64,000 nucleotides of DNA, from the NCBI RefSeq assembly GCF_006345805.1, contig NC_043003.1, forward strand, positions 18,042,001 to 18,106,000, given 5' to 3'. The notes under the pieces were generated by a model that saw nothing but the letters and a program-made list of their open reading frames with translations, was not told where the DNA came from and did no database searches. Positions 5,936-60,559 of the stretch are shown piece by piece. A program made the position numbers and the translations under genes. The stretch's first letter is position 1, and each line of letters opens with the position of its first letter. The stretch is from Octopus sinensis. Lineage: Eukaryota.

Positions 5936-5994
5936 ATATATATATATTTCATATATATATATATATATATGACTTGTTTTTTCATATATATATA

Positions 5995-8760
5995 TATGAA
6001 AGAAGCCGACAAAGGGAGCGCTGTGGTCCTTATGGACACGGAGTTTTATAAACACCTGGCGCTTTCCATGCTAAACAATAACATTTTCTATGAGGTTATT
6101 AACAACTATAAACAACAAAAAACAATCAGAAACCTCACCACACTCATACTCCAACACGGTCAGGGACTCACAGAAAAAGAAAGGGATTATATCACCAATT
6201 TCAAATGCAAGCCCAGCCTTTTTTATGGCCTTCCTAAAATCCATAAAAACAAATACATCACCGAAGCCTGCAGACTCTCCTCTGACATCCACATCAACAT
6301 CAAAGCACAGGAGGACCTAAAACTAAGGCCCATCGTGGCTGGCACCTCCTGTGAAACACACCGCCTGAGTAATTTCCTAGACATCCTTTTGAAACCTTTC
6401 CTTACCCACATCAAAAGTTTCATTAGGGATGATCTGGACATGCTCAAACACCTCCCGAAAACAGTTAACGAGGAGGCACTCCTGGTATCCTTTGATGTCA
6501 TCAACCTCTACACCAACATCCCACATGAATATGGTATTGAGGCAATTGATTTCTGGCTAGAAAAAAACACCCAGAGTCATTCCCTGACCGCATTCACAAG
6601 ACCTTTATTACGGAATCACTCAAGTTCATTCTAACAAACAATTTTTTCCTCTTTGGCAACACACACTACCGTCAAAAATGTGGTATTGCGATGGGTACCA
6701 AGGCTGCACCAGTCCTTGCGAATCTCATAATGGGTTTCTTCGAACTATCACTCTATGAAATATCACGCCAGAAATTTGGACATGTTTTCCACACCTACCT
6801 AAAGGAAAACTGGAAAAGGTAATTGGATGATTGTTTCATCATATGGAAAGAACCTTATGAAAAACTTATGGAATTCAAAACCATACTGAACAACGTACAT
6901 CCCAACATCCAATTCACTATGGAATTAAGCAAACATCATCTCCCTTTCCTTGATCTCCTAATTATAAAAACACCTAAGAACCAAATCATAACAGACATCT
7001 ACCACAAACCTACAGACTCACAACAATACCTCCTCCTTAGTTCATGCCACCCAAAACACACCAAGACAAATATCCCTTTCAACTTAGCTAAAAGGGTATG
7101 CACCATTGTCTCGGATTCAAAAACACGAGAAATACGCCTTCAAGACCTCAAAAAAACACTATTACAACGCCAATATCCCTCCACCCTTATAGAGTATAGA
7201 ATAAAACGCGCCAAAGAACTAGACAACATTACACTGAAAACCACCCAACCTAACACCACACACAACCCCAAAATACTTCCATACATTTCCACCCACAACC
7301 CCAAAAATATCGAAGCATACACCACAATCATACAAAACCTCAGTCTACTGTCAACAGACCCAAAAATGAAAAACATTATAAATACACACAAAATCCTCAA
7401 ATGTAAAAAGGCAACACAAATTTTTTAAAAAGACTCTTGACAAATGCCAAACTTCACACACCACATCCACCCCCAGCAGTTGAAAAAATGTGCACGCCCA
7501 AACTGTGGCACCTGCCCCTTCCTACTTGAAGGCTCTGAATTTATCTTCAAACAAGGAACGAAGTTTAAAATCAAGACTAACTTCTCCTGTTCCTCCGAGA
7601 ACCTTATCTACGTTCTCACATGCGCTGGTTGCCAACATAATTATGTTGGACAAACGAGTCTCCCGTTACGTAAACGAGTAGCGGTGCATAAAGAACAAAT
7701 AAATCTCCCGGAATACCGACAAATTCCACTGAGTGACCACATAGACTCATGCGCTAAAGACATAAATCCCAAATTCCACATATTCCCCTTCTACCAATGT
7801 AAAGACGGGATCACCACACAGGAGAGAATTAACAAGGAGAATCTCTTTATTGAAAAATTCAAAACGCAACTTAATATACAAACTCCTCGTTGATCATACT
7901 TCCTTTTTCTACCTCATTCTTCATGGATGGACTAACACAAATATATAAGGATACCATGCATTCATCACTTCCAGCTAAAACTTATATTCTTTAAATATCA
8001 TTATTATTATTGTTGTTATTATTACTATCACTTTTTTTATATATGACATAACAATCTGAAATGTAATTATAAATTGGTTTATGCAAATTTATATAATTAG
8101 AAAATAATATAAATAAAGTGTTAAAATCTGAATGTTAAGTTAGCAAACAATTATATAAAAAAGATAATGCAAATGAAGCTAAAATGATAATTTTATAATT
8201 TAAGGTTTATTAACACCCTTTATCACAAAAAATTGATAAACACAAATTGAAGAGCTCAAAACCCATAGAGTTGTCTCCCCTTATTCACAACACAGGAACT
8301 GAAGAACTACAATTACTACTACTTCCTGTTTTGCCAACACCCTTAATTAAACTAAACAACATATGGCTTTAATCCCATTGGATCTTAATACTTCAAGGTA
8401 ATTTTTTCGTGAACAATCATTAAACTCAAGATACACAAAGATTTCATAATGTATCGGAGTACTTATTTTTTAATTTTTGTACATATTTATCATTATTTTT
8501 TTGCAAAAAACAATGCAATTTTCTTTTTTCCCCTTTCTCACTTTTAAAAAAAATTTTTACTTTACAATTCTTGAAAAGTCACATTATGACGAAAACCGGT
8601 TTGAATTAATATATATTTATATATTTTATCAATTTTTCAAAAACTTTTTCCATACACCCATCTACATTAAAATTTTCTTTCAATTTAGCATTCTGCATTT
8701 TTACAATTTTTCCTTGCTTATCATTTCTCCACGTGCGGTCAACACAACCCTACCATTTAT
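5995..8760 (+). mobile_element. 5'-truncated Penelope-like element (RT + GIY-YIG, Neptune-like Cys-rich linker), recently inactivated
   Basis: ADKGSAVVLMD, FYGLPKIHK, LRPIVAG, SFDVINLYTNIP, GIAMGTKAAP, R*LDD (TAA at 6820-6822 replaces the Tyr of YxDD), CARPNCGTC and NLIYVLTCAGCQHNYVGQT. Frameshifts lie near 6565 and 7425. The ORF ends at 7893 and a hammerhead follows at 8566. Confidence 0.92.
8566..8607 (+). ncRNA. Minimal type I hammerhead ribozyme, U3:A8 core, in the PLE 3' region
   Basis: AATTC-TTGAAAA-GTCA(catta)TGAC-GAAA-ACCGGTT-T-GAATT. Perfect stems I and II and an 8-nt palindromic stem III (AACCGGTT), on the same strand as the PLE ORF. Confidence 0.75.
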
Positions 8761-27926: not shown

Positions 27927-28597
27927 CATAGGAAAAGGAAAGATCCAAAGAATGGAAGACGGAGGAAAAAATCGCCAACGAAACACACGCGGTCACTACA
28001 TACATACATACATACATACATACATACATACATACATACATACATACATACATACATACATACATACGACGGGCTTCTTTCAATGTCTATCTACCAAACC
28101 AACTCACAAGGTTTGCTATAGCAGAAGACACTTGCCGAATGGACCACGCAGTAGTATTGAACCCAAGACCATATGGTTGGGAAGCAAGCTTCTTGACCAC
28201 ACAACCATGCCTACATCCACATGTTCATTTGCATTCCTCGTTGTTAACTTTTCAGCATTCATTTTACCTTCCATGCTAAAACGTATCAGCCGAAATAATA
28301 TTCTAAGGAGTGTCTGCGAACTTGACATCGTGCCAAAAAAACATCCAGGCTGTTATCATCATATGCTGCGAAGAACAAGTTCAGACAACAAATGCTAGCA
28401 CTGAAATCGCTTCCTAAAGTAAAGTAGACCATCGTGAGATGTTTTTGTAATGTTAAATGATAACCAGATATGCTTACGCTAGAATGAACGTGAAAACAAG
28501 GCGCTAAAATAAGTCAATTTAGAATGGAGAAATGAAAACATACCCAACATCAACTATCACTAAAATAGAATAATATAACACACATAACACACACACT

Positions 28598-33660: not shown

Positions 33661-35009
33661 AAACACCAAATTCAATCCAACTAAACCACTTCTCCGCTTG
33701 ATCCACTCCATCCTTTTTCCCTGTCGCCAATCTCTCGCCACATACAACCATTTACATCACTGCATCATTTACAACTTCAGAAAGCCGGCCGAGAGCAGTT
33801 TACAAAACCACGCACTACTACACTAAATACACAAAACACGATTGTAGGCATCAGTTAATGTTACAGGGATGCTTGACAAAACCTATTAATATCCAGTCTC
33901 CCATTTCTGACAAAGATTAAATACAGCCCTCGAACAATGAAAATATAAAACAAAACCGAAAAAAGAACACATTGGTATGGGATATGGCGCCGCAAAAGCG
34001 TACACTGTACATTCCACCTAAGAAAAGATGTCGTGCATACCTCGGCAGCTAGTTCTTGGGTGTTGTTCAGCCATTGTTTGTGGTTGTTCACCATGTGTCT
34101 ATACTTAACTATTTATAGTTGCGTCCAAAGCAATGCGGTCATTATTATTTATTATTTAACTGGGCGTGCATGAGCATTTAATACGTTGCAGTTATTACTA
34201 TTCCACTCTGTCTACAGTTATGAACATTTTGCAACTGTTTTGACATCTGTATTCATCGAAGGGGAAATGAAATTTCTATCCTTTTCATGAGTTAATTTCC
34301 GTAAAAAGAAAAACAAGATGGAATCAAATATAAGTCGGAAGTTTTTATTTCATTTTTGTTTTGGTTTGTGAGCGCGTGTTTTAAGCCAGGAGATAAAAAC
34401 ATTTGAAAATTAAATGTAATAATACAAAATAAGTTGAAGAGATTTGTGATGTATTTACGAAAGAGATATAATTTATTGCTGAAACGAAGATAAATTTAAA
34501 TACTTTTCCAACGAAACATGTCTTTAACCGTAATTTTGGCTAACCACTATATATTTTGGCGAGCAGTAGTTTAACCAATCCGACTGGCGAATGTTACCAA
34601 ATCTGTTCTACTGGCAGGAAACCCAGAGTATCGGTTGTGGTACACTAAATGGAACGCACATAATATACGTGTGTGTATGTGTGTGTGTGTGTGTCTGTCT
34701 GTCTGTCTGTCTATCTGTCTGTCTGTCTATCTGTCTGTCTGTTTGTCTGTCTGTATGAGTGTGTGTAAATGTGTATAGGTGTATGTACATTAGCGTGTGT
34801 ACGCGTTTGGTGGTATAAACAAGAGAAACAAAAACTCAATAAACAAACAGAATTAAACTTCATAGCTAATGAGTACTCAATGATCGTTGGACAGTTTTAT
34901 GTTATCTATTATAAGCTGAAAACCTCCCTGGCTGTTATCCAGAGTTTAATGTTCCCGATCTTCGGACGATAGGAAATGAAAGATTCAACGTAGTAGTTAG
35001 TGAAATTTA

Positions 35010-35055
35010 TACATGCATACATACATACATACATACATACATACACACACACACA

Positions 35056-35086
<31 letters not shown>

Positions 35087-36135
35087 TACATACATACATA
35101 CATACATACATACATACATGCATGCATGCATACATACATACACACATGCATACATTGAAACATACATACATACATACATACATACATACATGCATGCATG
35201 CATGCATGCATGCATGCATACATACATACATGCATACATACATACATACATACATACATAATACATACATACATACATACATACATACATGCATGCATGC
35301 ATACATACATACTACATACATACATACATACATACATACATGCATGCATGCATACATACATACATACATACATACATGACCTGTTTCATTTTTTTAAACA
35401 GCGGCCATGCTGGGGCACCGCCTTGAAGGACTTTAATGGACCAAATTTTCTCCAGTACTAAAGTTGAGCTCTTATTTTATTGGTCTCTTTTGTCAAACTG
35501 CTACATTACAGGAGCGCAGATATACCGACACTAGTTGTCAAGTGGTGAGAACAGAAGAACGTAAACACAAAGATACACACACACAACACACACACGCGCA
35601 CACACACACACACAACACACATACATACATACATACATACATACATACATACATACATGCATGCATGCATACATACATACACACATGCATACATTGAAAC
35701 ACATACATACATACATACTACATACATACATACATACATGCATGCATGCATGCATGCATGCATGCATGCATACATACATACATGCATACATACATACATA
35801 CATACATACATAATACATACATACATACATACATACATACATGCATGCATGCATACATACATACATACATACATACATACATACATACATACATGCATGC
35901 ATGCATACATACATACATACATACATACATGACCTGTTTCATTTTTTTAAACAGCGGCCATGCTGGGGCACCGCCTTGAAGGACTTTAATGGACCAAATT
36001 TTCTCCAGTACTAAAGTTGAGCTCTTATTTTATTGGTCTCTTTTGTCAAACTGCTACATTACAGGAGCGCAGATATACCGACACTAGTTGTCAAGTGGTG
36101 AGAACAGAAGAACGTAAACACAAAGATACACACAC
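35010..36135. repeat. 553-bp near-identical tandem duplication (degenerate SINE D tail + (CATA)n/(CATG)n)
   Basis: The ~205-bp unique block at 35378 and 35931 is identical, and idiosyncratic microsatellite interruptions (tacattgaaac, cataatacat) are repeated. Confidence 0.9.
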
Positions 36136-37126: not shown

Positions 37127-37560
37127 AGCATCGGTTTCTTCGTCTCCGTTTTCCCCTACCTTATATAGCTGGCATGCATCTACCACCTTCTGTTCACTCA
37201 CAGCTACATCAAGCCACACTCAACTTACAACAGCTACTTCTACCGCTTCCTTATATTTCTTACTATCACCATCACCACCTCCACCACCAACATTATAGCC
37301 TTCCATATTTTCTTACTTTGGTCGCTCTTTCCTCGAATATCATCGCATTTCTCACCTCCTCCTCCTTTCACTCCTAAACGCCACTCCGTCTTCCTCTCTT
37401 CATCCTTTTTCCCCACTCTTGAATTTCTTCCTCATTTTTCTTACCTATTTACTTCCCTTTTCCTTCCTAACATGCCTTTCACCCCCTCCCCACCTTCTCT
37501 CTCTCTCTAAAACTATTTCCTCTCTCTTACTTTCTCTCTCCTTTTCTCTTCTTCTACTTC
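37127..37560. repeat. ~430-bp pyrimidine-rich repeat; second, highly similar copy at 50540-50975
   Basis: atgacagcatcggtttc.tcgtctccgttttcccctacc...cttcctaacatgcctt is shared. Confidence 0.9.
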
Positions 37561-37670
37561 TAATTTATATTGCTTGTTACTCTCTCCAATATCTCTCTTT
37601 CTTTCTCTCCTCCTCTCTTCCTTCTCCTTTCTCTTTTTCTGTCTATCTATCTACCTATCTGTCTATCTAT

Positions 37671-37733
<63 letters not shown>

Positions 37734-37829
37734 CCAACCTACCTATCTACCTACCTACCTACCTATCGATCTGTCTGTCTATCTATCTATCTCTCTACCT
37801 ACCTATCTATCTATCTATCTATCTATCTA

Positions 37830-37864
<35 letters not shown>

Positions 37865-38241
37865 GTTTGTCTATCTGTCTATCTATACCCCCACACACAC
37901 ATCCTTTCTCTCTCACTCTCTCTCTCTCACTCCCCTTCTCTCTCTCTCCCTCTCTTCCTCTCCACTTTCTTGATCCTTTCATCTCAATTTACCTTTCTTA
38001 TGTCGTTATTACACCTTATTCAATCATTATTTTTCTTTGCTTATTTTTATATACACTTAGTTTTATCGGTTGGGGCAGCGCCTTCCAACTTTTGATGCAG
38101 AAATATTTAATCTTGCCAGCAATAAGTGGAAACTTATAGCTTGTTACTCTTGTCTATTTCAGCTACCACCCTGCAAGAATGCAGACCTGCAAACTCGCAT
38201 ACACATATCCAAATGCTCAAACTGATATGTATGCTTATAAA

Positions 38242-41685: not shown

Positions 41686-42201
41686 TTAATCAACCATTTG
41701 GTTGCAGGCCTCTTCTAAATCATCACACATAGTTTTATATTTCGCCTGTTCATCTCCGAGTTCTTTTGTAAGTTTGTCGATATCATTCTCAAGTTTTTCG
41801 ACATTTCGTTCAGCCTCTAACGCCCTGCTTTCAGCTGATTGAAGCTTTGTAGAATCATCCTCGGCTTGTACTCTTTTCTCTTCTAATAAACCTTCTGATC
41901 GGGTAAGATCCGATTCTAAAAGATTGATTTTACGGTTTAGATCTTGGGTCTCGCTCTCCGTCTCGGACAGTTTCTCTTCTGTATATCGTAATAAGTCCTG
42001 TGTTTTCTCCAACTGACCAGTTAATTCATCAAAATCTCTTTCTAAATTTCCATGCTTCTTCTGAAGCCACGCCAGTTCGTCATCAACTTTCTTTTTCTCT
42101 TCTTCCAACTGTTGGTATTTGTTCGAAATGTCTTCAGCTTTTTCCAAAGCGTTTACTCGCTCCAGAATCAAAGCATTCATTTTTTTCTTGCACGCTTCCA
42201 T
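41686..42201 (-). CDS. Short intronless tropomyosin-like coiled-coil protein, 171 aa
   Basis: MEACKKKM N-terminus (cf. MDAIKKKM), LQKKHGNLERDFD, LNRKINLLESDLTRSE and AESRALEAERNVEKL. No Pro, continuous heptads, aaacATG context and TAA stop. Confidence 0.9.
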   Translation of the reverse strand: MEACKKKMNALILERVNALEKAEDISNKYQQLEEEKKKVDDELAWLQKKHGNLERDFDELTGQLEKTQDLLRYTEEKLSETESETQDLNRKINLLESDLTRSEGLLEEKRVQAEDDSTKLQSAESRALEAERNVEKLENDIDKLTKELGDEQAKYKTMCDDLEEACNQMVD

Positions 42202-42317
42202 GTTTACTTATATATTCTAATATAAGAGCCACGCGTTAACTTTCAAATCTAAAGTTAAGATATTCCGGTAATATATTCCAAAATATATATATATGATTTA
42301 TTAAGCACAGTCGAAGT

Positions 42318-42442
42318 GCTTCTTTGACTCCGAGGAGAACAACTTAATGAATCTGTAACAGAGCCAGAAGTGGTTGTAACTGCTTGATCAACTAACGTTA
42401 ACTACTTCTGTGTATCACTAACGTATGAGAGTTACCTACCTT
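42318..42442 (-). promoter_or_regulatory. Conserved upstream non-coding block of the 171-aa gene (probable core promoter/5' UTR)
   Basis: Aligns without gaps to 54747-54871 with about 23 mismatches in 125 bp, at the same distance from the ATG, with no codon periodicity. Confidence 0.6.
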
Positions 42443-42939
42443 GATTTATACAAATTCATCAATGTCATGATGAAATATATGAATGAACTATGGCGAGATA
42501 TTTTTCCAGGATTTTTATCGCTTTCTTTGACTTGTTTGTGATTTTCCCATTCTATATCGCTTTATCTCTGTAAATAGTTGTCGACACTAATAGTAATCCA
42601 CGCCATATATATGCGTCTATGTGTAAATGCACATATGTGTGTGTGTGTGTGTGTGTGCATTGTGCAGGTATATATTTTTCTATAATATAAATTGAACATG
42701 GGCTATCGTTGTATTCTTTCTTGTCTTGAGGTTCACACCCAAACGGCTGGGTGGATTTGTGTGGGAAATGACACACACGTGGAGACGGATGCATAGATTG
42801 GAATGTGGTTTGTACTTTTTTCCTAGCCCCCATAGTTACCGAAAAAATCTATTCAAGAGACCCGAAATAATAAGGTTGAGAAACGCTGTTATAGATTATA
42901 CCTAACCGAAAACGATCCCACCCACATCATCCAAACAAA

Positions 42940-43260: not shown

Positions 43261-43408
43261 TTGTATAATAAAGGTTATTTTAACGTACCGATCTACTTGG
43301 TAAAATCATTAATTAATTAATTGATTAATTAATTTAATTAATTAATTTTACCCTTTTATTATTAATATACGTACATATATGTATATATATATATATATAT
43401 ACTCATTT

Positions 43409-43808
43409 ACTCTTTTGCTTGTTTCAGTCATTTGACTGTGGTCATGCTGGAGCACCGCCTTTAGTCGAGCAACTCGACCCCGGGACTTATTCTTTGTAAG
43501 CTCAGTACTTATTCTATCGGTCTCTTTTTGCCGAACCGCTAAGTGACGGGGACATAAACACACCAGCATCGGTTGTCAAGCAATGCTAAGGGGACAGACA
43601 CAGACACACAAACATACACGCACACACACATATATATATATATATACATATATACGACGGGCTTCTTTCAGTTTCCCTCTACCAAATCCACTCATAAGGC
43701 TTTGGTCAGCCCGAGGCTATAGTAGAAGACGCTTGCCTAAGGTGCCACGCAGTGGGACTGAACCCGGGACCATGTAGTTCGTAAGCAAGCTACTTACCAC
43801 ACAGCCAC
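43409..43808 (-). mobile_element. SINE family D
   Basis: Near-full copy with an internal microsatellite. Confidence 0.85.
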
Positions 43809-51364: not shown

Positions 51365-51431
51365 AATTTATATAAAATGTTATATCTTCATTTTCTTACT
51401 CTCTTTGAGTATATGTATATGTGTGTATGAG

Positions 51432-51462
<31 letters not shown>

Positions 51463-51521
51463 TGTGTGCGTGTGTGTGTGTGCCCCTTCCTCTATCTATC
51501 TATCCGTCTATCTATCTATCC

Positions 51522-51566
<45 letters not shown>

Positions 51567-52100
51567 ATTCTCGTTCTTTTCAACTTACCTTTCCGTTGTA
51601 GTAATTACACCTTGCTCAAAATATTTCTTTCTTTCAGATGCTTTTCTTACTTTTTCTTTTTTACATCAGGAGGGCCATCTTTCTAGTTTTTCATGCGAAA
51701 TCTTCAATCGTCCCACAAAGAAGTAAAAACGTATAGCTTATAGCATTCGTCTGTTTCAGCCACCACCCAGCAAGAATAGGTTTAAAGGAGCGACGAAGAA
51801 AGCGCTTTCCAGAATTTATAATTTCTGATCTTATTGAGATACTAACTTTCATCCCTCTGGAATCGGTAAAACAAAGTAGGAGTCAAGTATTAGGGTCGAT
51901 GGTATCAACAGGCACTCTCCCTACAAAATTGTTAGCTTTGCGCCAAAATTAGACAGGGTCATCGTAATCATCATCATTATCAACATCATCATCATCATCA
52001 TTATACATTAATCTATGTAGGCAGGTATGTATAATTGCATAAGTATGCATATGTGTGTATATATGCGTACGTGTGTGTGTCAGAGAGAGAGTGTGTGTGT

Positions 52101-52202
<102 letters not shown>

Positions 52203-53997
52203 TGTACGTGAGAGCTATACTTAATTGTATTTTGACGGCAGTATTTATAGATATCGTGCAAATAGCGCGGAGAGTATAATCCTTCCTGTATTTGGGAAAA
52301 GTCGTCGTCGTCGTCGTCGTCGTCGTGGTTGTCGTTGTTGTTGTTGTTGTTGTTCTAATGAGCGTCTCTTGTTACTTTTCTCCAATTAAATGTTTAAAAA
52401 CCACCAAAGAGATTTCAGCGGAACACAAGTTGTTTTAGGAAAAATTTTTTTCGAAATCTCTTTGAAAAAGTAAACCACAGCCAGAAATGAGGTTATTTTC
52501 TTAAGTGTTGCGTTTCTTGGGCTATTTTAGCCATTTTTCAGTGAATTCTAATCAGTTGTTGCTGCTGCAGCCGATATATACAATGTATAACCAAGATAAG
52601 CAATCCTTCAAACATTTTGTGTATTTTAAGTTGAGAAGTATTGGAATAAAGAGCTAACAAAACGTTTGTATGTTTGTCTGTTTTCAGAAATACATGCACA
52701 TTGGTTTCCAGATAATTTTCTATTTTCTTGTTTTGTTTTTACCATAAAAATATAGAAAGAAAGTTAATACTGTCCAAAGTGAGTAGTCGTTTTATGTCAG
52801 AGCGTAAGTTTACTCAGACTAAAATATTTTCGGAAGACATTTTGATGGCTGTTTCTCTGTTGATGTTCATTTTTTTAAATCCAGTCGATATTTAATGTTT
52901 TAATGGGAAACACATACGAGTTTTTTTTTTTTCAAACAAGGAAGATTTATTGTTCACAGAATATGGCCATTGAAATTATTTCAGATTTGTTTGTAAAAAA
53001 CATACGTAGCTACATACATAATTTCAAAAGATTAGTATACACGCATATATACGTGCATACATATGTTCATACATACATACATACATACATACATACATAC
53101 ATACATACATACATACATACATACATACGTACGTACGTACGTACATACATACATATATACATACATGCATACATACATAGGTGTTTAATTACATACATAA
53201 ATATATGCATACATATATACACATTCGTGCTTACATATGTTCATACAAGCATACTGGTATGAGCATACAAACATATATGCATACACGCGTGTGCAATTAT
53301 GTACATAAAACATGCATACATACATACATACATACATACATACATACATACATACATACATACATACATACATACACACACACCTTCCTTTATGTATGTA
53401 TGTATGTATGTATGTATGTATATATACATACATGCATGTATGCATATATGCATAGATACATGCATGTATGCATATATACATACATGCATACATACGTATA
53501 TGCAAACATAATCTTCCTGTGTTAAGTTTAACATAGTTATTTAACAATTAACAATAATTTAACAATTAACAAGCAAACAAGTTGAGAACGATTTGGGTGG
53601 ATAAAAGTTCAAAATATCAGCAAAAGCTTTCATAACTTAAAAGCAAATGAAAGAAATAATTAACTTAATTTTCATATATTTTTTTTAAAATTAACCTACC
53701 ACTAACAATAATAATAAAAGCTGCTTGAATTGTGTAGCGTAAGATTTGAGTGTCATAAGAAAATGTAATACGAACCAGTACAAGATACAATAATTGGGTA
53801 TTAACACTGTCAAATAATGACAATGAGTAAATCGTAACATTTTTAAAGCAATTACTTAGATTTGTCTTTATGCATTATTCTTGCGTGTTTTTCGTTTGTT
53901 TTTTTTTCAGGGAGTGGGGGAAGATTGTTTTGTTTTTGTTTTTTGTTTTGATTTTTGTGGGGTGGTTAGATAAGCTCAGCTCTTAATCATAACTGTT

Positions 53998-54627
53998 CTA
54001 ATCCATCATTTGGGAGCACGCTTCATCCAAATCTTCGCACAAAGTTTTGAATTTTTTCTGTTCTACTTCGAGCTCTTTCGTGAGCTTTTCGATATCATTC
54101 TCAAGTTTTTGGACATTTCGCTCAGCTGTCAATGCCCGATTCTCGGCAGACTGGAGCTTCTCGGAATCCTCTTCGGCTTGCACTCTTTTCTCTTCCACTT
54201 GACTTTCAGATCGGGTAAGATCTAATTCTAAAAGATTGATTTTTCGGTTTAAATCTTGTGTTTCGCTCTCTGTCTCCGATAATTTCTCTTCTGTATATCT
54301 CATCATGTCCTGTGCTTTATCTAATTGGACAGATACTTCATCAAATTCTCTTTGTAAATTACTATACTTCTTGTGCATCCACACCAATTCCTCATCAACT
54401 TTCTTTTTGTCTTCTTCCACCAGCTGGTATTTAGCTAAACTTTCGTTCAAATCATCGTTCTCTTTCTCCAGAGTTCCATACTTTTTCTGTAAAAACATAT
54501 AATCGTCTTGAATTTTATCGCGTTCTTCTTCAACCTGCTTTAGCCTTAATTCCAGTTCCTCGGCTTTTTCCAGAGCATTTACCCGATCTGCGACTAAGGC
54601 ATTCATTTTCTTCTTGCACGCTTCCAT
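53998..54627 (-). CDS. Short intronless tropomyosin-like protein, 209 aa (paralogue with 38-aa internal duplication)
   Basis: About 127 of 171 alignable residues are identical to the 171-aa paralogue. Extra segment ELELRLKQVEEERDKIQDDYMFLQKKYGTLEKENDDLN; aaacATG context and TAG stop. Confidence 0.9.
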   Translation of the reverse strand: MEACKKKMNALVADRVNALEKAEELELRLKQVEEERDKIQDDYMFLQKKYGTLEKENDDLNESLAKYQLVEEDKKKVDEELVWMHKKYSNLQREFDEVSVQLDKAQDMMRYTEEKLSETESETQDLNRKINLLELDLTRSESQVEEKRVQAEEDSEKLQSAENRALTAERNVQKLENDIEKLTKELEVEQKKFKTLCEDLDEACSQMMD

Positions 54628-54746
54628 GTTTATTTGTGTATTTTATATATAAGTGAATCACGCGTAAAAAGTCTTGGCTCAAATGGGAAAATAATCCGGA
54701 AGTTTATTCTGATATATATTTTGGAAAGCACGACTTGGAAACAAGA

Positions 54747-54871
54747 GCTTCTCTGACTCCGTGGAGAATAGCTTTGTGAGTCTGCAACAGAGCCAAAAGT
54801 GGTTGTAACTGAATAATCAACTAACGATAACCTCTTCAGTAGTTCTCTAAATTTTGAGAGTTACCTACCTT
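54747..54871 (-). promoter_or_regulatory. Conserved upstream non-coding block of the 209-aa gene
   Basis: Counterpart of 42318-42442; contains TCAGTT (Inr-like) on the gene strand. Confidence 0.6.
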
Positions 54872-55818
54872 TGTGTGTATACACTACACCTTTTCACTCA
54901 ATTTTTTGAAAATAAAGCTCAACTCAGTTTCAAACTAAAATAAATTTGATCATAGATTAAAACAACTGGGCACTGATTTAGATAACAGGGTGTTCGGGTT
55001 AAGATCTGACAGCTTTTATACCCCATCCAAAAATAAAATCCTTTTTTTTTAAATCAAAATGTGTCAACTAGGTTCACACACACACACACACACACACACA
55101 TACATACATACATACGAGGAGCTTTCATGCAGTTTCTATTAATCAAATTCACTGAAAACAGTAGAAGGCACTTGACCAAGGTTACGTGCAGAGGGACTGA
55201 AACCGAAACCTCGTGGCTGTAAAGCAAACTTCATAACCACACCGCCACGAACTTCAATTTAAGTCATATGAATTCTCATTTAAATCAAACGAATAGCAAT
55301 TTAAAATAAATTAAAGTCAATTTAAAACAGAGCAAAATTTATTTTAAACAAACCAAAGTTATCATTAAAAAAATACATGAATTTAAATCTATTGAAAGTG
55401 AAATCTATTCATAAATAAATGGAAAGGTTTGAAATTTAGCACCGATATTACTAATTAGTATATCCAGTACGTTCGTCGGTATTTTAATTAATCGGGTAAA
55501 CTTTGAAGATTTAGCTGCTCTTTCTAGCAGTTGGAACAACCTCGAACAACACGTGTATACAGACGTCTCAACATGTCCACATCTCTTGATTAATGTTGGA
55601 TCAGTTGAAAGAGGAAGGAGACTGTCGCTAATTATAAGTATTACGAATGAGGGTACTTCTATGAGACTGTCCGAACTGCTAGAAATAGCCACCGAATCTT
55701 CAAATTTTACCCTATAACGGATGAACGTATGGGATAACTTAATTAGTAATTTCTTCGCTAAAATTCGCACCTTTCTCTTTTATTAATGGATAAATTCCAT
55801 TCTCAAAATATTTAATCC

Positions 55819-56397: not shown

Positions 56398-57160
56398 TTA
56401 TTACATCCGCCTTAACGAAGGCGAAGGTATTGTTTTCAGTCGTGCTCGTTTGTTTGTTTGTTTCTTCGACGAAATATCTCAAAAACCGCTGGATGGATTC
56501 GGGTAAAACTTTCAGAGATGTTTGACCTCCTGACTGGCACGAACTGGTTAAATTATGGGGACGATCCGGTACTGGACAAGGATTCTGGATTATTTTTCCG
56601 AGTTTTTTTACTCAATTTAGGAGTAGGAGTGGCTGTGTGGTAAGAAGCTTGCTTACGAACCACATGGTCCCGGGTTCAGTCCCACTGCGTGGCACCTTGG
56701 GCAAGTGTCTTCTACTATAGCCTCTGGCCGACCAAAGCCTTGTGAGTGGATTTGGTAGACGGAAACTGAAAGAAGCCCGTCGTATATATGTGTATATATA
56801 TATGTATGTGTTTGTGTGTTTGTGTTTGTTCCCCCAACATCGCTTAACAACCGATGCTGATGTGTTTACGTCCCCGTAACCTAGCGGTTCGGCAAAAGAG
56901 ACGGGTAGAATAAGTACTAGGCTTGCAAAGAATAAGTCCTGGGGTCGATTTGCTCGACTAAAGTCGGTGCTCCAGCATGGCCACATTCAAATTACTGAAA
57001 CAAGTAAAAGAGTAATTTCATTTTTAGTATTCTCGTTTGCGAGAGCAGTCGAGTTTATTTCAGATATTCTCATTTTAAAAATCATCTATGGCTAATCGTT
57101 GAGAGGACGTTGGTGTCGCCTTGGCGAAGGTTTGCGCTCTCTCTGAGTGCTCTTATTGTA
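56398..57160 (+). mobile_element. Non-autonomous Helentron/DINE-like element interrupted by a family D SINE (56619-57013, AATTT TSD)
   Basis: 5' ttacatccgccttaacgaaggcgaagg, (GTTT)n, atatctcaaaaaccgctggatggatt; 3' cgccttggcgaaggtttgcgctctctctgagtgc. The SINE is flanked by aattt on both sides. Confidence 0.6.
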
Positions 57161-58727: not shown

Positions 58728-59831
58728 TTATTATTTATACAAAAAGAAGCCATCATAATCTATACTTGAATATCTTTGATAATATATCTGCTCGTTCAGA
58801 ACTCTCTAACATAGGGTTCAACAACACATAGCTTGCCGGAATCTTGATCGCCGCGACCTGTGTCTATCATTTCTATAATGACTTTTGCTCGTCTAACACA
58901 GCGTGTACTGCAACAACTATCACCAACTTCTCCTCTATTTGTCATCCTCATTTTGTATTTGCTGTCATAAGGACAGTGCCAGACACGATCATTTAACCAA
59001 TTTAAAAGACATTAAGGCGGCGAGCTGGCGGAATCTTTATCGTAGCTGGAAAAATGCTTGATGGCATTTACTCTGACTTTACCTTCTCAGTTCAGACTCC
59101 GCCGGGGCCAACTTTGCCTTTCAATTTTTCAGGATCGATAAAATAAGTGCCAGTTGAACACTGGAGTCGATGTAATAGACTTACTACTGCCCATAAATTC
59201 ACTGGCTTTGTGCCAAAATTTGAAAGCAATTTTAGAGACATACCGTCTGCAAACTATAGCTTGTGTTGTGTTGTATCGTCTGCAACTATAGCTTACAGAA
59301 GATGTAAGGGACATAACTTTTATAGATTAAACAGCTACTGTAACATTTTTCCCTTCGGTACTATATTGCTAGCCATATACATATAATCAATAGGCAGACG
59401 GGCAACATGGTGGTTAGAGTGCTGGACACACGATCATAAAGATGTGAGTTCGATTCCTGCACCAAGCAGTGTTTTGTGTCCTTGAGCAAGGCACTTCATT
59501 TAACGTTGCTTCAGGTTGCTCAACAGAAAATTAGCAACAGTTAAGTCTGGCGCAGCCAGTTGCGCAGCTAGAGTGCATGCTGCCTGAGGCAACCCTTGAG
59601 CTACTCCCGCCCTGCACCCGATACAGACTGATGCATTAGACCCAAAAGTGGCGCCCCTTACCCGTCCAATTATGCTGCCGGTTGCACCCTTCTCTCCTTC
59701 GGCTGTATGCTGTTTGATATACCTTATTTGTCTATGTTATTCATATACATACCATTGGCTACTCTGAGTTGTCTCGACTCGGCTCGTTTTCGTTTCACTT
59801 CCGCAACTTACTTGGGCCATAAATGTGTTCT

Positions 59832-59933
<102 letters not shown>

Positions 59934-60559
59934 CGTGCGTGTGTGTGTGTGTGTGCGTGTGGTTCTTCAGCACACAAGTTAAGCAAATGCTGTGTTGATG
60001 ATAACTATCGAGGCAGAAACACGAATCCACAGCTGTTCCCTTATTTCCATATAATCCAACTATCCTATCCTTAACCACATGCCAATTTTGGAGAATCCTT
60101 GATTCCCAAAACTATCTCCCCTTCTCATTTGGCTTCAGTTCCAATTGCCACCGGGCGACTAGAGATAATTTCAATAAACCAAGAATTTAACCTGTATGGT
60201 GTTTAATATACCCTTTTTTCAACTTTAGGGATTACTAGTCGCGTGTAAGTGCAGCCCTCTTCTCTTTCCGACTGTCACAATCCGCGATGTTCCGTTGGGT
60301 TTTGGATGAAAGGGCCGAGAGAATATCAGTCTGCTTACAACTACGTAAGCACTTAAAACAACTAACAAAAGCATGAAACATGCTACCGAGTCACACTCAC
60401 TTGAGAGCTGTGCCTATGGTTCTCCTCTTTATACATACATTCTTTTACAGTCTTTATCCATTAATTAAATATTAAGCCTGTTTTATATACAGATTGGTTC
60501 TACTTTGGTATGTGATCTACAACTTAAAGGGCCATTACTTTAGGTTACTTTTTAGTTCA

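Follow-up and report, generated by a model that had tools for sequence, protein, structure and literature searches.

A tandem pair of short tropomyosin-like genes in Octopus sinensis differing by one copy of a 38-residue module

The window analyzed here, a stretch of 64,000 nt of the Octopus sinensis genome (NC_043003.1, 18,042,001-18,106,000; all positions below are window positions), contains two short tropomyosin-like genes encoding proteins of 209 and 171 aa, located about 12 kb apart and both on the minus strand (Table 1). The coding sequence (CDS) of each gene is a single block, without introns. Both products were matched by the Pfam family PF00261 (Tropomyosin; gathering cut-off, 38.6 bits), with 67.6 bits for the 209-aa protein and 70.3 bits for the 171-aa protein, and the tropomyosins of the PDB matched both of them in HMMER with E values of about 2e-15. 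The two proteins were 61% identical in BLASTP, the sole gap of the alignment being one of 38 residues, and a single gap of 114 nt was observed when the DNA of the two genes was aligned. This 38-residue block, whose translation is ELELRLKQVEEERDKIQDDYMFLQKKYGTLEKENDDLN, accounts for the whole difference in length between the paralogues.

Table 1. Positions of the two tropomyosin-like genes, their 38-residue units and associated features in the window (ORF, open reading frame; Tm, tropomyosin).
Feature	Position	Strand	Basis
209-aa short tropomyosin-like gene	53998..54627	-	Uninterrupted ORF with two 38-aa units; Pfam PF00261 match
Unit 1, residues 24-61 of the 209-aa protein	54445..54558	-	38 aa missing from the 171-aa paralogue
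Unit 2, residues 62-99 of the 209-aa protein	54331..54444	-	Copy aligning with the sole unit of the 171-aa protein
Residues 60-70 of the 209-aa protein, +3 heptad shift (stammer) at the junction of units 1 and 2	54418..54450	-	Viterbi register
171-aa short tropomyosin-like paralogue, one unit, unbroken heptad	41686..42201	-	ORF; Pfam PF00261
Single unit of the 171-aa protein (residues 24-61)	42019..42132	-	Alignment; canonical Tm placement
5′ flank common to both genes	54628..54871 (209-aa gene); counterpart 42202-42442 (171-aa gene)	-	blastn; alignments

The two loci were 73% identical in blastn from position 54557, inside the CDS, to a point some 245 nt 5′ of the ATG. Since the similarity reaches this far beyond the start codon, the pair arose by tandem duplication of a DNA segment comprising the 5′ flank. 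The 250 nt or so preceding both genes (54628-54900 and 42202-42474, minus strand) were 67–71% identical between the Octopus paralogues and 53–57% identical to the Argonauta orthologues (counterparts on L003 and L004). These flanks also contain splice-like motifs (AAG|GTAGGTAAC … TTGCAG|A), and an intron in the 5′ untranslated region upstream of both genes is possible.

Within the 209-aa protein, two related segments had been predicted 38 residues apart, and they were located at residues 33-60 and 71-98, a spacing of exactly 38. When the product of the 209-aa CDS was compared with itself, the best self-diagonal was the one at offset 38 (BLOSUM62 score of 77), a value reached by 2 of 2000 plain shuffles. 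As coiled coils resemble themselves anyway, a stricter null was used, in which residues were shuffled only inside their heptad register classes. A score of 68 was obtained for the alignment of unit 24-61 with unit 62-99, whereas the register-keeping shuffles averaged 4.8 (sd 13.0; z = 4.85) and none of the 20000 attained the observed value (0/20000). The same test applied to the 209-aa orthologues gave z = 4.6 in O. bimaculoides and 5.5 in Argonauta. The internal repeat of the original prediction was therefore significant in a formal comparison, and mere coiled-coil periodicity was ruled out as its origin by the register-preserving shuffles.

Each unit was also slid along five canonical 284-aa tropomyosins, through all 247 possible positions. 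Unit 1, unit 2 and the unit of the 171-aa protein all found their best placement at residues 24-61 of canonical tropomyosin (Tm), and not at the following period, which indicated that the units are copies of one segment rather than successive canonical periods. The alternative that the two units of the 209-aa protein represent canonical periods 1 and 2 was discarded, given that both preferred Tm 24-61 over every other placement. The fit to this segment was best for unit 1 (score of 51), followed by the 171-aa unit (46) and unit 2 (36). Unit 2 was identical to the 171-aa unit at 21/38 positions in Octopus and 24/38 in Argonauta, and to unit 1 at only 11–13/38. The module carries an LQKK…E.E.D motif.

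A length of 38 residues corresponds to five heptads plus three residues, and the extra block had been expected to introduce a stammer. The heptad register was assigned by a simple Viterbi procedure with break penalties of 6 and 8, and with both of them one register break (…abc|abcd…), a +3 shift, was detected at residue 67 in all three 209-aa orthologues. The 171-aa proteins had no break, and neither did four canonical tropomyosins of 284 aa. The core residues around the stammer (L60, L/I64, Y67 and V/L70) are retained in Argonauta. The AlphaFold2 (AF2) model of the 209-aa protein, a monomer that shows just one long helix, was continuous from residue 2 to 208, with a predicted local distance difference test score (pLDDT) of 95.

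Both genes are conserved in other octopods. Chromosome OX597820.1 of O. vulgaris encodes a protein identical to that of 209 aa, and the 171-aa protein differs by one residue from its O. vulgaris counterpart (P0001). Orthologues of both were found in O. bimaculoides and Argonauta hians (P0002 for the 171-aa protein), where the 209-aa gene lies upstream of the 171-aa gene in the same order and orientation. As the pair is present in Octopus and in Argonauta, the length difference is older than the split between them. The automatic names given to the 171-aa orthologues are diverse: “tropomyosin-2-like” in A. hians (P0002), “Hypothetical predicted protein” in O. vulgaris (P0001) and “tropomyosin Por p 1.0101” in O. 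bimaculoides (P0003). In the last of these (193 aa; L003 10001-14687) an upstream exon takes the place of the first 33 residues of the 171-aa ORF, which are conserved, while the intact ORF is present at L003 14172-14687; the N-terminus of P0003 reflects either an error in the gene model or the use of an alternative first exon.

When two Octopus species were compared, the 209-aa gene had a ratio of nonsynonymous to synonymous substitution rates (dN/dS) of 0.13 and the 171-aa gene one of 0.18. In the comparison of Octopus with Argonauta, dN was about 0.09 and saturation had been reached at synonymous sites. Both genes are maintained by purifying selection. In unit 1, 11 nonsynonymous differences over 95 sites were counted between Octopus and Argonauta, vs. 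14 synonymous differences over 19 sites, and this unit is itself under constraint.

To place the short proteins, they were compared with canonical tropomyosin along their entire length. The claim that the 171-aa protein is colinear with Tm held for residues 1 to about 114, which aligned without gaps; beyond them there is a jump in the alignment, which continues with Tm ~227-284 shifted by exactly 112 residues, all other offsets scoring far lower. This jump, by which approximately Tm 115-226 is absent, corresponds to 16 heptads, so the heptad phase is kept exactly. The canonical animal length (~248/284 aa) is not reached by these proteins of 171 and 209 aa, which are 112 residues short of the 284-aa forms. 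The parts best conserved among the short proteins are the N-terminal MEACKKKM… and the C-terminal segment; MEACKKKMN and C..L.EAC.QM were invariant in 6/6 octopod sequences. In tropomyosins, the N-terminus and the C-terminal segment form the head-to-tail overlap. Both proteins belong to an apparently undescribed family of short tropomyosins, in which Tm 1-~114 is followed, in phase, by Tm ~227-284.

Furthermore, relatives of this family were sought outside octopods. When 1.84 billion representatives were scanned in full with HMMER, the sole entries ranking ahead of ordinary tropomyosins were the octopod cluster and P0005, a fragment from a Tara Oceans metatranscriptome. P0005 was 37% identical to residues 38-152 of the 209-aa protein without any gap, and therefore has two units. 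A search seeded with P0005 retrieved P0087 (180 aa, Tara), which is colinear with the 209-aa protein without gaps, and P0088, located on L005, a 953-nt poly-A mRNA contig from SRR9970006 (Logan). In L005 a frameshift at a run of nine A residues (541-549) splits the ORF into gene calls of 137 and 91 aa and is probably a homopolymer error of assembly or sequencing. Read through this frameshift, the contig encodes 247 aa, exactly 171 + 2 x 38. This protein (X247) has three units, with Trp at 46, 83 and 121, self-diagonal scores of 144 at offset 38 and 88 at offset 76, and two register breaks. The stammer is confined to multi-unit forms.

Word-indexed protein searches with the 209-aa protein, a six-sequence profile and P0005 yielded only three annotated octopod proteins of the 171-aa type, two MERC fragments and one Logan fragment, with no decapodiform or other molluscan member. 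No relative was found in the JGI metagenome contigs scanned, and nothing relevant on cephalopod intronless or retrogene tropomyosins was found in the literature. An Elysia match (P0004) was considered as a member and rejected, being the C-terminal part of a canonical tropomyosin. In a tree built on the 171 shared columns, the short family was monophyletic (100/98) and grouped with animal tropomyosins. X247 branched as the sister of the whole octopod set (98/98), within which the 209-aa genes formed a clade (89/99) and the 171-aa genes were basal, with the shortest branches.

The octopod proteins share with canonical animal tropomyosins (high-molecular-weight forms of 284 aa and low-molecular-weight forms of ~248 aa) the MxAxKKKM and LQKK motifs, the C-terminal overlap region and the a = 1+7n phase. 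Canonical genes have many alternatively spliced exons, whereas each octopod protein is encoded by a single coding block. Canonical length varies by the choice of exons, with unbroken heptads, while in the octopod family it varies by the copy number of a 38-aa module, with heptad breaks. The canonical animal lengths of ~248 or 284 aa give 6 or 7 periods. On a length argument only, the number of actins per molecule, taken as (L-10)/39.3, would be 4.1, 5.1 and 6.0 for proteins of 171, 209 and 247 aa.

The length difference between the paralogues had been likened to that of the Saccharomyces cerevisiae tropomyosins, and the published facts agreed with those given in the original prediction. The greater length of Tpm1 (199 aa) relative to Tpm2 (161 aa) is due to an internal duplication of 38 aa (PMC12440208), and the two proteins span five and four actins, respectively (PMC2120352). 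The inserted 38 residues follow codon 35 and provide one more actin-binding period, and a stammer is present in fungal tropomyosins as well (PMC3805550). In S. cerevisiae and Nakaseomyces glabratus, as in octopods, the two forms differ by exactly 38 residues that repeat the neighbouring sequence. The extra block also has an N-terminal site in both groups, after codon 35 in yeast and after residue 23-26 in octopods, and the octopod block would be equivalent to the single actin-binding period that separates the five-actin from the four-actin yeast protein. The two systems also differ. The octopod one-unit protein has no register break and the stammer comes with the extra unit, whereas a stammer is present in fungal tropomyosins; the 161-aa form is universal in fungi and the 199-aa form clearly derived, whereas both octopod forms are old and the direction leans to loss; and a three-unit member of 247 aa exists in the octopod-related family, unlike in the fungal pair. 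The octopod event was also correctly taken to be independent of the fungal one, given that the 38-residue units correspond to residues 24-61 of animal Tm and that the tree places the family with animal tropomyosins. The likeness is convergent and not due to common descent. The yeast parallel is apt, and it is strengthened by the 171/209/247 series.

Taken together, the pair is probably a tandem pair of short tropomyosins that differ by copies of an actin-period module, with length tuning as in fungal Tpm2/Tpm1 and an ancestor that leans towards two units. The frame of the family consists of the N-terminal ~114 Tm residues joined in heptad phase to the last ~58, with sixteen heptads missing, and its members differ only in the copies of the module: one in the 171-aa form, two in the 209-aa form and three in the distant 247-aa relative. 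Each extra module, of five heptads and three residues, brings a stammer at the module junction and would extend the rod by roughly the length of an actin subunit (38 x ~1.5 Å = ~56 Å). The proteins are predicted to work as parallel coiled-coil dimers arranged head to tail along actin filaments, spanning about 4, 5 and 6 actin subunits, so that the length tuning of fungal Tpm2/Tpm1 would have been reached independently.

As regards the direction of change, the data do not support taking the 209-aa form as the derived duplication: both forms are old, the outgroup relatives are multi-unit, unit 1 is more canonical-like, and trees that make the two units sisters are worse. It had been anticipated that the 171-aa form would be a deletion if the outgroup orthologues all carried the extra 38 aa. 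The only outgroup relatives found do carry two or three units, which places the direction in doubt without formally reversing it. Unit 1, supposedly the extra copy, resembled the canonical segment more than unit 2 or the 171-aa unit did (see the scores above). At unit positions 5–7, K-Y-Q is found in unit 2 and the 171-aa unit, as opposed to K-L-K/R in canonical Tm, unit 1 and unit 1 of X247; the last two likewise keep the canonical start, ELE.(K/R)L. The K-Y-Q shared by unit 2 and the 171-aa unit is a derived state. In a maximum-likelihood tree of the units, resting on 38 columns, the later units of X247 grouped with unit 2 and the 171-aa unit, and unit 1 fell outside this group. Forcing the two 209-aa units to be sisters worsened the log-likelihood (lnL) by 8.4–9.1, and fully lineage-specific duplications worsened it by 14.7, with p of 0.07–0.11 in the approximately unbiased (AU) test, while trees constrained to an old duplication equalled the free tree in lnL. 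These comparisons lean towards a two-unit ancestor, from which the 171-aa gene would have lost exactly one module; they are not decisive.

Several observations weigh against the reading of a length-tuned pair with a two-unit ancestor. As to the direction, the AU tests all remained above 0.05 on these few columns; at unit position 27, Tyr is common to both 209-aa units, the residue being His or Asn in the 171-aa unit and in the relatives' last unit; and the count of events ties, with three under either scenario. There are also signs of gene conversion between the Octopus paralogues, which could blur the relationships among units: identical synonymous codons were more frequent between them (68%) than in all other comparisons (~55%), and their 5′ flanks resemble each other more than those of Argonauta (see the identities above). 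No 209-aa protein of any species was present in a collection of 15 billion proteins, only the 171-aa genes are annotated, and exact look-ups of the 209-aa proteins returned genome contigs only and no transcript assemblies. Finally, actin binding and stoichiometry of the octopus proteins are deduced from homology and length only.

One alternative, which we consider rather unlikely, is a gain. According to it, the ancestor was a one-unit, 171-like form, the 209-aa lineage gained, once the gene had been duplicated in tandem, an internal 114-nt tandem duplication whose upstream copy diverged fast, and the units of X247 arose independently. The unbroken heptad of the 171-aa form and its colinearity with canonical Tm 1-114 are consistent with a gain, and so are the short basal branches of the 171-aa genes, the Tyr shared by both 209-aa units and absent from the 171-aa unit, and the AU tests, which do not reject it. 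The direction of the fungal event was also a gain (PMC3805550). Nevertheless, such trees lie 9–15 lnL below the free tree, and a gain requires either that L changed to Y and K to Q in parallel in unit 2 and in the 171-aa unit, or that unit 1 reverted to the canonical ELE.KL start, kept also by unit 1 of X247. Moreover, all of the outgroup relatives found are multi-unit.

A second alternative, which appears improbable, is that these proteins are tropomyosin-derived coiled coils that do not decorate actin and have another role (e.g., as tissue-specific scaffolds), the 38-aa step being an easy unit of slippage. The loss of the central 112 Tm residues, Cys instead of Ile at residue 4, the altered C-terminus, the lack of annotation of the 209-aa gene and the weak Pfam matches to many coiled-coil families besides PF00261 could all be accommodated by such a role. 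However, the ends that form the head-to-tail overlap are the best-conserved parts and aligned to those of tropomyosin in HMMER against the PDB structures (residues 1-64 to Tm 1-64, and residues 86-207 to Tm 160-281), and the deletion holds the heptad phase exactly (112 = 16 x 7). Furthermore, the 171/209/247 steps are of exactly 38 residues, which is not a heptad multiple, in two distant lineages, as in the actin-binding fungal tropomyosins (PMC3805550). The last alternative, decaying retrocopies or chance ORFs in which the repeat is only coiled-coil periodicity, drew on the intronless CDS, the repeat-rich surroundings and the unannotated 209-aa gene, and it is effectively refuted by ORFs intact in three species at the divergence and dN/dS values given above, by a repeat that beats the register-preserving shuffles and by the transcription of the relatives (the poly-A contig L005 and the Tara metatranscriptomes).

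Additionally, other elements were observed in the window. An inverted repeat of ~400 nt with 88% identity lies near both genes (~56629-57015 and ~43407-43808). The ORFs 56612-56986 and 27952-28398 have a common translation (…RRHLP..PRS..EP.T.W…) and contain pieces related to this repeat, probably one of those dispersed in the octopus genome. Many spurious ORFs stem from long microsatellite tracts (CA, TATC/ATAC and similar) at 51400-53550, 34900-35400, 37400-38150 and 59700-60080. ORFs resembling the remnants of retroelements are present on the plus strand at 142-949 and 5969-7893. In the latter region, the ORF 7444-7893 (+) showed a weak GIY-YIG match (PF01541, 21.7 bits, just below the cut-off of 22.6), and the ORFs 5969-7428 (+), located 5′ of it, look reverse-transcriptase-like by eye and had no Pfam match. 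The ORFs at 5969-7893 (+) may correspond to a Penelope-like element.

The length of a tropomyosin is thought to decide which actin filaments are coated, and how. To our knowledge, yeast Tpm1/Tpm2 has so far been the only natural pair one actin period apart through an internal repeat. We tentatively propose, as a possibility that goes further than the pair itself, that animals have a hitherto undescribed family of miniature tropomyosins whose length is quantised in 38-residue steps (171/209/247 aa, for ~4/5/6 actins) by gain and loss of an actin-period module that overrides heptad continuity, and that octopods have kept the 4- and 5-actin forms since before the Octopus-Argonauta split, in an independent replay of fungal Tpm2/Tpm1. 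The conserved octopod 209-aa genes are flagged here as missing from current protein sets. If the proposal is true, 38 residues with a stammer, and not 35, 39 or 42, would be the physically preferred increment per added actin in a short tropomyosin, and the animal series of one, two and three modules would be a second natural experiment on why the step is 38 and not a heptad multiple. It would also bear on the tolerance of register breaks on actin, and would mean that period-wise length tuning can go in both directions.
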